64,000 nt of DNA from Zygnema circumcarinatum SAG 698-1b (GCA_037447605.1 CM074821.1:1612001-1676000), one strand, 5' to 3'. Positions 3,501 through 9,683 are shown, numbered from the stretch's first letter. A program made the numbers and translations. The notes: generated by a model from the letters alone, not told the origin.

Positions 3501-4358
3501 GCGATTTTTTTCTCGAATCAGAAAAAACCATGAACCTGGAACCAGGAGAACCAGGAACGAGGAACCAGGAATCTGGAGGCCGTTAAAAATAAGATTAAAG
3601 CTTAAATGCATTATAACAACTTCATATGAACGGCGGCCGGGCTGCATATGTGAAGCATAAGGTCCACATACAGGAGGAGAGGAACTAGAGGAGAGCACGA
3701 GAGAAAGAAAGAGAGAGAGAGCGGGAGAAAGATACCGATAGAGAGCAAAAGGGAGCTAGAGAGAGAGAGACCGATAGCGAAAGAGATCTAGAAAGAGAGA
3801 GAGACACCGAGAGGGTGAGGGAGGGAGGGTGGGGGGGCAGTGTGAGAGAAAGACGAGCACACCTGCGATTCGAACGTGGTGTTCTAAGTTGTCGCCTCCC
3901 TCCCTCCAGCCCTCCGCCACCCCCTCCCAGCACTCCTCCTCCCCTTTCGCCTCCAGCTCCCTCCTCCGCCCTGAGCCCTCCCTCCGCTCTACGCCCCGGA
4001 AGCCATGGCCTTCCTTTGAACCGCCCCTCCGCTGTGAAGTATCAGAAGTGCGGTTTTCCAAACTCCACGTGTCGGCGTGCAAAGCCTCGCCTTCGACAGG
4101 CGGCGGAGGGCTGCCACGTGGCGCCTCTTTGGGAGGCCCAGGGAGCGGTCTGGTGTCGTATCCGCGCAGGACAGGTGTCGCAGCGGCTGCCCAGGACCCG
4201 CCATGGCGGCGAGAGATGGAGAGGAGGAGGAGAAGGGAGAGGAGGCGAGGAGGGAGCCGGCAGCCATGGCCGGGCCCCCGGGAGGAACCGGCAGGCGCTT
4301 GGCGGAGGGAGAAGAGGCGCCGAGTTGGAGTGTGGGAGGTTGCGGTGCGGAGATCCAT
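554..4358 (-). CDS. PC-esterase/TBL-like SGNH O-acyltransferase candidate, ~586 aa, 7 exons (4358-3863, 3338-3192, 3059-2921, 2694-2339, 1835-1618, 1466-1273, 764-554)
   Basis: GT-AG exon chain with consistent phases (1,1,2,1,0,2) ending at TAG 556-554. Motifs in TBL/PC-esterase order: PCSYRQFGRWV, KWKFQPYEC, IFFVGDSM, ADLIVMGTGTW, RVLWRSIPP, YMDFWP, WKKDAHF. N-terminal hydrophobic stretch LLSLLLLLSIS. Exons 2-3 are the least certain (weak acceptor at 3059). Confidence 0.7.
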
Positions 4359-4703
4359 GGCGGCCTGCGACTGAGAACAACAGAATAGGAAGACGAGGGA
4401 GCAAAAAGAAGGAAACGCCGCGTGATTTCGTTTTGGAAATTGCTTCGCTGTTCGCGGGCGGTCCCCTGCGAGGCGACCACGCGCGGGCGGGCGCTGGCGA
4501 GGGGGGGGGGGGAGGTCCAGGTTTGCAACTCAAAACTTGAGGGGGGTCCAGGTTTGCAAGTCAAAACTTGGAGGGGCCAGATTTGCAGCTCAAAACTTTT
4601 CGATGGGGGGGGGGGGGGCAGGTTTGCAGCTCAAAACTTGAGGGGGGGGGGGGTTCCAGGTTTGCAATTAAAAACTTGCAGGGTCTGACGAGTTTCTGAG
4701 GAC
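4167..4703 (-). repeat. Duplicated promoter/5'UTR/leader block, copy 1 (copy 2 at 9190-9683)
   Basis: Alignment by eye runs from CAGGACAGGTGTCGCAGC to GGGTCTGAC..GTTTCTGAGGAC. Both copies encode [10 protein letters not shown]...WAAAATPV. Confidence 0.95.
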
Positions 4704-5000
4704 CTTCATTGCTATTTTAATACTTTTAGAAACGACCCAATGGGTACCAGCCAGATGTAAACTCTGAATCTATTTTGCAAGCGTGGCGATTCGTCATTGG
4801 CTTATGTTGCAACTAGATATAAAAAGAACCACGGCCGTACGGACGACGATGGATTTCGGGTACAGGACAATTTTGGTCGGCGCTGTTTGATTGGTCGTTA
4901 TCAAATCGCACGGAACCCACATGGCAAAAAGTGGAATCCACACCTGCGACCGAACATGTTGATTCTTTGAACTTTTTCATCAGGACTTTTCGCTTTCTTA

Positions 5001-6101: not shown

Positions 6102-6496
6102 ACACCTAGCACAAGTCCTCCTCTGGCCACTACTGCCATCGACCTTCTTCAAGGCGGTGAGAAGTATGTCGTAGCAAAAAAAATCTTCACTAACATGAAT
6201 AAGCTTTTATTTAAAAGAGTCAAAGGTGAAAAACCCAAAAACAAAAGTGAAAAATAAAAGCGTCGAAATGCAGCGCGCCATTCCTTTGTGGATTGTGCAT
6301 GCATCGCTGAATGGATGTAAGGACGCCGGAAAACAGTGTCACATCACGTGGTCGGCGGAGGATGGGGATGGAAACCACTAGCAGAGATGACCCTGCCTTA
6401 TTGCATCGGGGTTTAGGGTTAAGGGCTCAGGATTTAAGACTAAGGGTTGCCGGTTAAGGGTTTAGGGTTTAAAGGTCAACCGCACGCAGCGTCTGT

Positions 6497-9381
6497 CTAC
6501 CTCGGACCCTCCGTGAGATCATTGAAGGTGTCGAGCTTGAGGGCCGCGCGGCGGAGGACCTCGTAGTCCACCACGCCCTGCACGCACGGAGGGAAGGAGG
6601 GAGGGAGGGAGGGAGGGAGGGACAGGATGTAGACGAGGAAGAGGAAGAGAGCGCGGGAGAGGGTTTGCCTGTGTCAAACCTTGCGGAAAGCACACAAGTA
6701 CATAGGGCCCGTATGGGAAGATCATCCGTAGCATTTCTCAGACTAGGACAACCCCTGTAGGAGGCTTAAGATTGACCAACCAACTGACCAACCGACCGAC
6801 CAACCGACCGACCGATTGACCGACCGACAGTCAGTGCAAGCCCTTACCGACATGAGTCCATCGAACTCGGGCCGCCTTGAAAACCCGGAGTTGAACTTCC
6901 ACCAATCGCTGCCCGGAGCCCACAAGTGTTTGTAACTGTTCAACGTCTTTGTATGCGGATAATAACTTAAAAGCGGATCGAAAAAATCTTCTTTCTCCTC
7001 GTCGGAGGCAATGTAGATTGCTGTTTCACTGGAGACGTTCCGCTGCTTCAATACTTCAAGTATACTGACATGCCATGTCATGCAGACAAGGATCTTAGTT
7101 GGCATTGCCTCTCACCTGTCACTTTCTCCCCTTCTTCCCCTTCCCCTTCCACTCGCCTCTCTCACTCTTCTCCCCCTCCCCGTGCATCTCTCACCCTCAC
7201 GTACCCCTCTCTCTCCTCTATCCTCTCCCCTCTACCCTCTCACCGGTCCTCCCTCCCCCGTCCTCTCTCCCCCCGCTCCCATCTCGGGTTGGCTTGGAAA
7301 CCCGGAGTCTTTCTCTCCCATCTCCCCTCTCCCTCTCCCCCTTCCCCTCTCACCCTTCCTCCCCCCCTCCTTATCCCTCTCTCCCCGTCTCCCTCCCTCT
7401 CCCATCTCCTCCTCCCCCTCTCTCGCTCCCAACCCCATCCCCCACTCCCCCTTCCTCCCCCCCCCCTTCTCCTCTCTCCCCCCTTCCCCCTCTCCCCGCT
7501 TCCCCTCTCCCTCTCCCCCTCTCCCCCTCCCCCCCTCCTCCTCCCCCTCCCAGTCCCCCTCCCCCGTCTTTCCGAGCACTTCTGGCGTGAGTGCCTTTCG
7601 GGGGTAAACATTTCCAAGAAGTCTTCATCCAAATAGAAATTTTGAACAAGCCCCTCCCCCTCTCCTTTTTCTTTTTTAGGGTTAGGTTGTGCGCTTACTG
7701 CGGAGGGCTCGTGTCCCTATCGAGGTTGGGCCACCTCGCGGGGAACTTCAGCTTGTCTCCTCGCCGGACATGAATGGCCATAAAATTTCCGCGCAGATCC
7801 TTCAGAATCTCTTTGGCTATCTTCGTGAGAGAGGGAGAAATTGCAAACCCCCGACTCGGTCGCTTTATTTGCTGCATTAAGGGGGGGACGAGGAGGGTTT
7901 CGAAGGTTTTTTTTAGTTTAGGGTTTTCAGGTTTTTTAAGCGCTAAGGAAGAAGGGGAGGGGGGGAGAGGTCAACTTCACATGCTTGAAGACGAGCAAAA
8001 GCAACCATCAGAGCAGAGTCAGTTTTGAGTTTTCGACCGACCGGTCGCAGTAAGCACTTTCAAACGAAAATAAACTTTAACTTTCCTGACACATCAAGGT
8101 GCTAAAAAAAAATGTTGCTCATGCTTCTTCTTCCTTTTTTTCAGCGTGCGTGTTTTGGAATCAATGACATATTCTAAAACTCGTGTGCCATGTAAGGGAC
8201 ATGGACAGATCTGATGCTGCATTATACATATATATACATATGTGATATAATAATAATAATAACCAAAGAAATCTACAAAAGCAAATACCTTATTTATCGA
8301 GCAAGTGACGAATCCGTACTGGCGATCCTTTTCATAGTGGCGGTAAACGATGGTTGCGTTGCATTCCTGCACTTCTTCAAAGGGGGGCCCTCCGCCGATC
8401 GGATAGTGGCACACGGATACCTCCGTTCCGTTCTGGCCTCCGTAGCGCTCCCAGCCCTTCAAGAAGGCAGGCATGGTGATGATGGGGAAATGTCTGCATC
8501 ACAATTTCAGAAATCGAAGGAAGAAAATCAACTAACAGGGAAATTTCAGAAGTCGAACACGGCAAAAAGTGAAATTTATTTCCAGGAAAAACGCCACGTC
8601 GTTCTCCATGTGCCCGATTTAGGGTTTTTCGTGCTCTTGGGCTGACCAGTGTTTCTCGGGTACTTTGGCACAAGCTCTGTGCTTTTGAAGCTCTGTAAAC
8701 AATACATTTCCCGAGAGTTTTTTTACGGTTTTAAGGGAGGTTGTAAGGTCTTTAGGGTCTGTAAGAGTGGATTATTAGGGTTTTTTATTTTTTTAGGGTT
8801 TGTAACGTTTGTACGAGTGCAGGTTCAGGGTGTCGAGGTTTTTCGCCTTTGTAAAGGTGAGGATTCTAGGGTTTGAAGCATGTTCCGCCCCACGCTTTGC
8901 TGCCTTGCTGCAGAACGCACTTCCTCATGTACCACAAGTCGAAGAACTGCTCGAACTTCCTGACCTCCGTCCGGCCCTTGTTGTGCTGCGCCACCACCCC
9001 TATCTCCGTGTCCAGCACGAAGATGCGCCGCAGGCGGAGCGCCTCCCCGAGCATGCACCCGTAGCTCCACGTGCGGTGGCGGATGCCGGCCATGAAGTCG
9101 TTTGAGTTGCGCTCGTAGTACAGGTACCGCGCCGCCGGGTCGAAGGCCTTCTCGCCCTTCCCGCTGCGCCAAGGGAGGGCGTCGGAAGACAGGACAGGTG
9201 TCGCAGCGGCTGCCCAAGACCCGCCATGGCGGCGAGAGATGGAGAGGAGGAGGACAAGGGAGAGGAGGCGAGGAGGGAGCCGGCAGCCATGGCCGGGCCC
9301 CCGGGAGGAACCGGCAGGCGCTTGGCGGAGGGAGAAGAGGCGCCGAGTTGGAGTATGGGAGGTTGCGGTGCGGAGATCCAT
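6497..9381 (-). CDS. SUB1-like/GT68-like putative O-fucosyltransferase-fold protein, paralog A, 378 aa (exons 9381-8921, 8493-8289, 7871-7699, 7064-6848, 6577-6497)
   Basis: Exon lengths 461/205/173/217/81 stay in frame with GT-AG ends. Motifs [60 protein letters not shown] match the plant family containing Arabidopsis SUB1/At4g12700/At2g04280/At3g56750 (recalled, not searched). Confidence 0.85.
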
Positions 9382-9683
9382 GGCGGCCTGCGACTGAGAA
9401 CAACAGAATAGAAAGTGGAGGGAGCAAAAGGAACACGCCGCGTGATTTCGTTTTGGAGATTGCTTCGCTGTTCGCGGGCGGTCCCCTGCGAGGCGACCAC
9501 GCGCGGGCGGGCGCTCGCGAGGGCGGGGGGAGGTCCAGGTTTGCAATTAAAAATTTGGGTCGGGGGTCCAGGTTTTCAATTAAAAACTTGGGTGGGTGTC
9601 CAGGTTTGCAGCTCAAAACTTGGGGGGGGGGGGGACCAGGTTTGCAGTTAAAAACTTGCAGGGTCTGACAGGTTTCTGAGGAC
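9190..9683 (-). repeat. Duplicated promoter/5'UTR/leader block, copy 2
   Basis: Near-identical to 4167-4703, with one fewer ~30-bp promoter unit. Confidence 0.95.

Follow-up and report, generated by a model that had tools for sequence, protein, structure and literature searches.

Two adjacent genes with one 5′ end

We analyzed a stretch of 64,000 nucleotides from Zygnema circumcarinatum SAG 698-1b (GCA_037447605.1 CM074821.1:1612001-1676000), referred to here as the window, with all positions counted from its first letter. Near its beginning lie two adjacent, co-oriented genes on the minus strand: a PC-esterase/TBL-like gene (554-4358), here called the acyltransferase gene, and GT-A (6497-9381), a gene for a DUF7075/O-fucosyltransferase-like (O-FucT-like) protein, which has three paralogs, B, C and D, further along the window. 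These two genes, which encode unrelated enzymes, begin with copies of the same block of about 0.5 kb, comprising a short tandem array, a 5′ untranslated region (5′UTR), the start codon and the first 64 codons of the protein.

Copy 1 of the block occupies positions 4167-4703 (537 nt) at the acyltransferase gene and copy 2 positions 9190-9683 (494 nt) at GT-A, in direct orientation and 5,023 bp apart, as delineated by a repeat search and by MAFFT alignment. Over the entire block the copies share 95.5% identity (469 matches, 22 mismatches and 9 gap events), bearing out the near-identity that the original prediction, made from the sequence alone, had reported at these coordinates. The duplication is real, and both variants of the block are present in independent public runs, among which runs X2 and X3 contain 0.94 of the 31-mers from 8600-9700. 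The 100 nt on each side of the two copies do not align. Following the shared residues ...PVL the acyltransferase continues with RGYDTRP and GT-A with different residues; the homology does stop abruptly inside exon 1, as had been claimed. In the coding part (4167-4358 against 9190-9381; 192 nt, or 64 codons) there are exactly three substitutions, two synonymous (4332, His; 4194, Ser) and one exchanging Leu in copy 1 for Val in copy 2 (4232, L43V). The substitutions had been listed correctly beforehand, along with a codon count of 63 that is one too low. The 142 nt (copy 1) or 139 nt (copy 2) adjoining the ATG are 96.4% identical with two indels, while the tandem-repeat part is 91% identical with indels and holds five units in copy 1 and four in copy 2. 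The coding part is the least diverged portion of the block (1.6% versus 3.6-8.7% elsewhere), the changes in it being too few to demonstrate selection.

No third copy of the block was found by a repeat search of the whole window, and a 63-nt probe and the 23-nt core of the repeat unit matched just the two blocks within the 64 kb (chance expectation 0.00 and 0.01, respectively). Terminal inverted repeats and target-site duplications were neither reported by the repeat searches nor visible at the block boundaries. A metagenome scan with a 26-mer from the 3′ end of the block and an Rfam search of positions 1-12000 each returned 0 matches. The block was also considered as a transposable element or as a gene fragment captured by one; nothing indicates this, there being two copies in the window, no flanking inverted repeats and directly coding sequence on one side.

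For the acyltransferase gene, public contigs of four runs (three RNA-like and one DNA, X11) were placed on 2230-5970, a range that covers block copy 1 only. The gene model, built from RNA joints, loose contig ends and a frame check, has seven exons (4358-3863, 3338-3192, 3059-2921, 2694-2339, 1835-1618, 1571 or 1538-1273, and 764-557) and a stop codon at 556-554. Its reading frame is open from ATG 4358, the sole in-frame ATG of exon 1, to the stop, giving a protein of ~610-621 aa, and all introns are GT..AG. Two of the minus-strand introns are spliced in contigs: 3862..3339 in contigs of X13, X2 and X5, and 2920..2695 in a contig of X13, with paralog-like versions in X2 and X5. The 10 nt of a loose end at 3060 are identical to those directly preceding the GT at 3191, giving an in-frame intron of 132 nt (3191..3060), and a 194-nt loose end at 2338 corresponds to the start of exon 5 at 1835 and links exon 4 to exon 5; the two further introns were placed from canonical splice sites. 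The spliced model contains GPCSYRQFGRWV, FFVGDSMT and KKDAHFSCP. It thus shares with PC-esterase/TBL O-acetyltransferases (PF13839 with PF14416) what we take to be the TBL hallmarks, namely Cys...GxW, W-x-F-x-P-x-x-C followed by FFVGDS, and a C-terminal D-A-H-F-x-C-P (DxxH motif). Unlike these enzymes, it carries an N-terminal extension of ~290 aa before the domain, made up of the leader, a disordered region and two small exons. Contigs of X13 also run over introns 3 and 1 (2665-2949 and 3337-3569) at a depth of 23-62, which indicates retained introns or abundant pre-mRNA.

GT-A has five exons (9381-8921, 8493-8289 or 8277, 7871-7699, 7064-6848 and 6577-6500, followed by the stop), with alternative donors present at exon 7064-6848. 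Its in-frame models, with canonical GT..AG introns, encode about 378-404 aa. The open reading frame (ORF) that starts at ATG 9381 continues past the block junction and enters the catalytic domain without an intervening intron, and public runs contain 0.69-0.94 of the words of the exon 1 region. What the data show is the duplication with its boundaries, in-frame models for both genes, and part of the splicing. A reading of the run lists in which each gene would be active in different samples was dropped: the lists give at most four runs per study, and the spliced acyltransferase contig also occurs in X2 and X5.

The assignment of GT-A rests on several searches. With tblastn, four proteins (P0001, P0002, P0005 and P0018) that score 7.7e-15 to 9e-41 on PF23272 matched four or five exons in order in 5200-9400. 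The transcript-derived algal protein P0001, which covers four or five exons in order, aligns from window position 9189, the first codon past the block. An exhaustive phmmer search with exon 1 gave 16 matches, the best at 41% identity and the closest from Spirogloea, Mesotaenium and Closterium; these relatives carry the Pfam domain DUF7075, some with a weak O-FucT match. None of the 16 matches reached the leader, in libraries that apparently lack this genome's own proteome, and a protein database search with exon 1 including the leader (171-aa query; candidates of at most 299 aa) found no match. Compared with the DUF7075 (PF23272)/O-FucT-like (PF10250) proteins, GT-A exons 1, 3, 4 and 5 align at 33-64% per exon to Spirogloea and Mesotaenium proteins and to P0001, and GT-A has an HVRRGDK segment; single exons stay below the Pfam thresholds (best O-FucT score 15.8-16.3 bits against a cut-off of 31.5). 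What GT-A does not have is the usual N-terminal anchor and stem of its own paralogs.

The conventional N-terminus is exemplified by paralog B, whose exon-1 ORF (21165-22418, minus strand) includes the N-terminus MSSGRGSQCLFVSMAVAVGFTIGLCFC..., followed by a Pro-rich stem; its counterparts are C (28842-31211) and D (34395-34895). All three start with a short N-tail and a 19-residue hydrophobic segment, followed by the Pro-rich stem and then PPWRTGRGE, an architecture different from that of GT-A which had been pointed out beforehand and which sequence and hydropathy support. In a blastp comparison against all ORFs of the window, B, C and D align to GT-A from residue ~69-71. GT-A departs from them exactly at the leader, which stands in place of the membrane anchor and the Pro-rich stem. 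The block ends 4-5 codons ahead of the conserved domain start PWR(S/T)G, and the next residues, SSDA, align with SSKS of paralog D. Relics of an older GT-A N-terminus were not detected upstream of 9683 by tblastn with the N-termini of B, C and D; the sole match was SSKSPPWRTG... directly after the block. At the nucleotide level GT-A has just a 105-nt match at 72% to B or D, compared with 82-88% between B and C. Set against this paralog divergence, the 95.5% identity of the two copies makes the block the youngest event in the cluster.

The shared 5′UTR and leader

Read in gene direction, the block consists of four to five units of ~33 nt, a GC-rich segment of ~140 nt, the start codon in the context GCCGCCATGG, and the 64 leader codons. 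Each unit is an imperfect palindrome followed by a C-run. The units of copy 1 lie at 4501-4703, where the plus strand reads CCAGGTTTGCAnnTnAAAAnTTG with a G-run, and their counterpart in copy 2 lies at 9521-9683. Inside the block no ATG precedes the start codon, over 345 nt in copy 1 (ATG at 4358) and 302 nt in copy 2 (ATG at 9381), while the next 247 nt just outside contain three and six ATGs. Such a distribution looks like that of a 5′UTR. Folding of the tandem-repeat part as RNA gave z-scores of -0.9 and -2.6, with no structure common to both copies.

Run X1, which is labelled RNA, contains 0.69 of the sampled 31-mers of 8600-9700, a rough estimate because the words were sampled and the error of the share is not quantifiable. 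The exon-1 donor at 8921 and the 5′ edge of the block at 9683 enclose a fraction of 0.693 of 8600-9700, which suggests a transcription start of GT-A at the edge of the block or close to it. Since the two values match and the 5′ part is free of ATG, most of the block looks like transcribed 5′UTR with little promoter. The sequences upstream of the two copies differ, with unrelated transposon-like repeats at each locus. A dispersed repeat at 4713-4896 begins 10 bp upstream of copy 1 and has 75% identity to 11824-12004 and 13155-13335. A second, different one at 9703-9967 begins 20 bp upstream of copy 2 and is 91-93% identical to 36768-36970 and 35609-35756. The claim of the original prediction that the two genes share a copied promoter is therefore not upheld. 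On the transposon-like sequence upstream of copy 1, contigs of low depth (5-18) without mismatch were present at 4649-4916 in all three RNA-like runs; they could stem from a start site further upstream, from a divergent transcript or from the transposon itself.

The leader encoded at 4167-4358 (minus strand; MDLRT...AAAATPVL) contains nine Arg, one acidic residue and a Leu-rich core of 11 residues, and its counterpart at 9190-9381 (minus strand) differs by the three substitutions given above. The core, LLSL(L/V)LLLSIS, has a hydropathy of 2.6. The best 19-residue Kyte-Doolittle window of the leader reaches 1.03, compared with 2.31, 2.14 and 1.71 in paralogs B, C and D, and the leader lacks the ~17-20 hydrophobic residues near the N-terminus that characterize a type II signal anchor. 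Measured against signal peptides, it has AAAA downstream of the core, an unusually long n-region (38 aa) and two Arg after the core. Judged by the length of its core, the leader resembles a signal peptide that may be cleaved, or a weak anchor, more than a type II Golgi anchor. The plug-in expression and targeting cassette proposed earlier is supported in part: the 5′UTR and leader are shared, and a common regulation and compartment of the two enzymes would be conjecture.

The first 38 residues, rich in Arg, Ser and Thr and nearly free of acidic residues, also resemble an organellar presequence, which would make the compartment addressed by the leader ambiguous. Both enzyme families act in the secretory pathway. 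As neither GT-A nor the PC-esterase/TBL-like protein has any other hydrophobic segment, the Leu-rich core is the sole candidate signal for the endoplasmic reticulum (ER). Both proteins would then begin with a common Arg-rich leader, which probably acts as a signal peptide for the ER, and may be cleaved, instead of serving as a type II anchor. If the leader is cleaved, GT-A would be soluble, whereas B-D would be anchored.

Probable origin of the shared N-terminus

The copying was recent and joins two unrelated enzyme genes, both readable in frame from the shared ATG, as had been recognized from the start. We infer the direction of transfer, the mechanism and the function of the leader from the sequence. 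With a probability of about 0.55, recent local copying made GT-A chimeric, its own anchor and stem being exchanged for the 5′UTR and leader of its neighbor. A segment of ~0.5 kb (the 5′UTR with the tandem array, an ATG in strong context and 64 codons) would have been copied between the adjacent genes, and GT-A would likely have lost its ancestral membrane anchor and Pro-rich stem, kept in B-D, to the 5′UTR and leader of the PC-esterase/TBL-like gene. Transfer from the acyltransferase to GT-A is somewhat favored by the anchor-stem architecture of all three paralogs and by the family-like sequence of GT-A that resumes right after the block. We put the odds of this direction against the reverse at ~55:25, the remainder falling to a third source or an artefact.

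Most likely the mechanism was a local partial duplication or illegitimate recombination, for which two routes can be envisaged. If 4167-9189 had been duplicated in tandem, with a breakpoint inside exon 1 of each of the parallel genes, the acyltransferase 5′ end would have come to lie before the GT-A body, the remainder of the second copy having been lost later. Alternatively, templated repair of a break from the neighbor 5 kb off could have copied 0.5 kb in a single event. In GT-A the breakpoint falls within the coding sequence, homology to P0001 beginning at 9189 and homology to the paralogs 4-5 codons on. On the acyltransferase side the junction lies in a non-conserved region, and we infer a breakpoint there. 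The chimeric ORF is intact, in frame and transcribed, as seen from the five-exon and seven-exon models, the words in the runs and the spliced contigs.

Such events have precedents. When the two breakpoints of a tandem duplication fall in parallel genes, a chimeric gene results, as described in Drosophila surveys (PMC4069613) and in a review (PMC3449122), and chimeras formed by partial duplication are expected to alter targeting or membrane domains (PMC4069613; PMC3449122). The locus in Zygnema resembles the surveyed cases in having a young direct duplication at a distance of a few kb, with breakpoints in coding exons of co-oriented neighbors, and in that the gene at the junction combines the 5′UTR and N-terminus of one parent with the body of the other, in frame. 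It differs in that no more than 0.5 kb of a presumed unit of 5 kb remains doubled, so that a second event or templated break repair is needed, and in that, unlike the Drosophila chimeras, it concerns a streptophyte and two carbohydrate enzymes of the secretory pathway. Targeting presequences copied between unrelated plant nuclear genes have also been described (rice rps11-1 from atp2, Arabidopsis sdh3 from hsp70 and carrot rps10 from hsp22; PMC2631504). In these three examples, as here, an N-terminal leader of targeting type was duplicated onto an unrelated gene. As presented in that source, they are mitochondrial presequences of genes newly moved from the organelle, whereas in Zygnema the recipient would have given up an N-terminal anchor that already worked, and the 5′UTR was copied too. 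The process, chimeric genes by partial duplication and presequence copying alike, is known and well documented, so that no long-standing question is opened; the example here is young and clean.

If the transfer from the acyltransferase gene to GT-A is true, it represents a very young N-terminal swap (1.6% coding divergence) in which the anchor and stem of a GT were traded for the 5′UTR and leader of a neighboring acyltransferase. The targeting or topology of Golgi and cell-wall enzymes could then shift in one step, in this case possibly from membrane-anchored to soluble or differently retained. Paralogs B-D, which retain the old N-terminus, would make the locus a natural experiment.

Several results weigh against this reading. 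Past 4703 and 9683 no collinear homology was found, the matches there being unrelated transposon-like repeats only. A simple tandem duplication, in which the entire unit is doubled, does not describe the locus, and with nothing past these positions duplicated the tandem-duplication route needs a second event. A DNA contig of X11 (3995-4167) at single-copy depth ends exactly at 4167, and the X11 depth inside the block is 0-6, compared with ~21-28 in most of the listed single-copy contigs. Among the contigs listed, none extends over 4166|4167 to connect the block with the acyltransferase side. Moreover, a 945-nt contig of X13 matches 4167-4543 over its positions 544-920 with one mismatch and no gap, and is thus of copy-1 type (copy 2 differs from this stretch by many substitutions and indels), yet its first 543 nt are joined exactly at 4167 and have no fit in 2230-4166. 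The mismatch is absent from the table of differences and therefore most probably falls in the high-depth zone 4167-4229, where 4194 is the sole difference between the copies. This contig could be an assembly-graph mosaic of two known messenger RNAs (mRNAs), joined via the 37 identical nt at 4195-4231 and with GT-A exons as its tail, or it could stem from a third locus that carries the block.

The identity of the presumed donor enters on the same side. Single exons of the PC-esterase/TBL-like gene gave no match in Pfam, PDB or, for exon 4, a protein database. The language-model neighbors of exon 4 (0.81-0.86) belong to PC-Esterase, PMR5N and PC-Esterase+PMR5N clusters, a set that makes up 58 of 100 matches and provides leads only. 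On the motifs and these leads, assignment to the PC-esterase/TBL family is probable, if weakly so. Furthermore, variant contigs at 2509-2548, 3081-3174 and 3888-3891 show 4-6 differences per ~110-130 nt and slightly different exon 3/4 junctions. In DNA their depth is 2-3 times that of single-copy sequence, and in RNA it reaches as much as 585. Close and more highly expressed PC-esterase-like paralogs are thus present elsewhere in the genome.

Among the alternatives, transfer in the reverse direction is the most serious, though unlikely. Here the leader would be native to the old GT-A lineage; a tandem copy of GT-A would once have lain downstream, and a deletion would have fused the 5′UTR and leader of that copy to the PC-esterase/TBL-like body, replacing the N-terminus of the latter. 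This scenario is about as simple as the favored one. At 5,023 bp, the spacing of the blocks resembles the 5.5-7.8 kb period of the GT array. The genome contains several copies of the acyltransferase, judging from the depth of the variant contigs, and GT-A, as distant from B or D as the 105-nt match at 72% implies, is an old paralog that had time to evolve an N-terminus of its own. The end of the X11 contig at 4167 would suit a recombination junction in the acyltransferase gene, but may be a mere drop in coverage. The anchor-plus-stem N-terminus of all three GT paralogs argues against the reverse direction, as do the failure to find GT remnants in 1-4166 and the position of the block end, 4-5 codons before PWR(S/T)G and with SSDA aligning with SSKS of D, which suits a breakpoint in the stem of GT-A. 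It is improbable that the block is instead a discrete multicopy unit, bounded by the transcription start on one side and a fixed 3′ end on the other, present at one or more third loci and grafted onto several genes, so that neither gene in the window would be the source. The X13 contig, in which a block of copy-1 type meets 543 nt of different sequence exactly at the shared boundary, and the rough coincidence of the 5′ block edge with the transcription start estimated from X1 would agree with this. Against it stand the number of copies, just two in 64 kb, the lack of terminal inverted repeats and target-site duplications, the empty metagenome scan with the 3′-end 26-mer, and the possibility that the X13 contig is a mosaic via 4195-4231. 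A still bolder version, a mobile and reusable 5′ exon cassette at three or more loci that is grafted in frame onto unrelated secretory enzymes rather than copied once, we consider rather remote.

Two further explanations concern the genes and the assembly rather than the direction of copying. The leader might be present but unused for targeting in one or both genes, through a downstream start at a Met in acyltransferase exon 2 or 4, or because the chimera is decaying. Its short hydrophobic core and an Arg/Ser-rich N-region closer to an organellar presequence, the in-frame Met codons in exons 2 and 4, and the RNA-run contigs over 4649-4916, which make the transcription start uncertain, speak for this. 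However, the leader begins at the first ATG, in the context GCCGCCATGG, after 300+ nt free of ATG; the two long ORFs are unbroken and their splice sites canonical, no second hydrophobic segment that could provide the secretory entry needed by both families occurs in either protein, and the coding part is the best conserved portion of the block. A leader without use is accordingly judged quite improbable. The least probable explanation is an assembly error, in which the join of copy 1 to the acyltransferase at 4167 would be a mis-join and the leader would belong to GT-A alone. None of the listed contigs shows the junction; at 4167 the X11 contig stops and the X13 contig departs from the flanking sequence, and the assembly does contain 10-N gaps and, beside one of them, a 100%-identical duplicate of 300 nt (11311-11610 = 12642-12941). 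Depth holes in placed contigs, however, carry no weight as findings, and the missing bridge over 4166|4167 thus does not count against the junction. In addition, no gap lies near 4167 or 4703, the copies differ by 22 substitutions and 9 indels with the copy-1 type recovered in an independent run, it is the frame of the leader that remains open through the RNA-supported introns as far as the stop, and assemblers do not merge on an overlap of 1 nt.

Repeats in the surrounding sequence

Some 20 units of (GTTCCA)n form a perfect array (5977-6101) between the stop codon of GT-A and the 5′ region of the acyltransferase gene. A high-copy dispersed repeat occupies 5105-5354, with an X11 DNA word depth of 459-1023 against ~21-28, and has relatives at 36039-36161, 35651-35755 and 9868-9962. 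The two identical 300-nt stretches further along the window are 1,331 bp apart and adjoin an N-run of 10 N at 12632-12641; positions 12102-12200 and 13433-13531 are likewise identical. These stretches look like assembly redundancy around a gap, not biology. Finally, the open frames 5′ of the start codon of paralog C (28842-31211, minus strand) contain hundreds of dipeptide-repeat codons, (CP)n, (MP)n, (HA)n and (HT)n, and those 5′ of the start codon of paralog B (21165-22418, minus strand) contain (GR)n, (GE)n, (ER)n and (AR)n. These frames are microsatellite arrays directly 5′ of the two paralogs.

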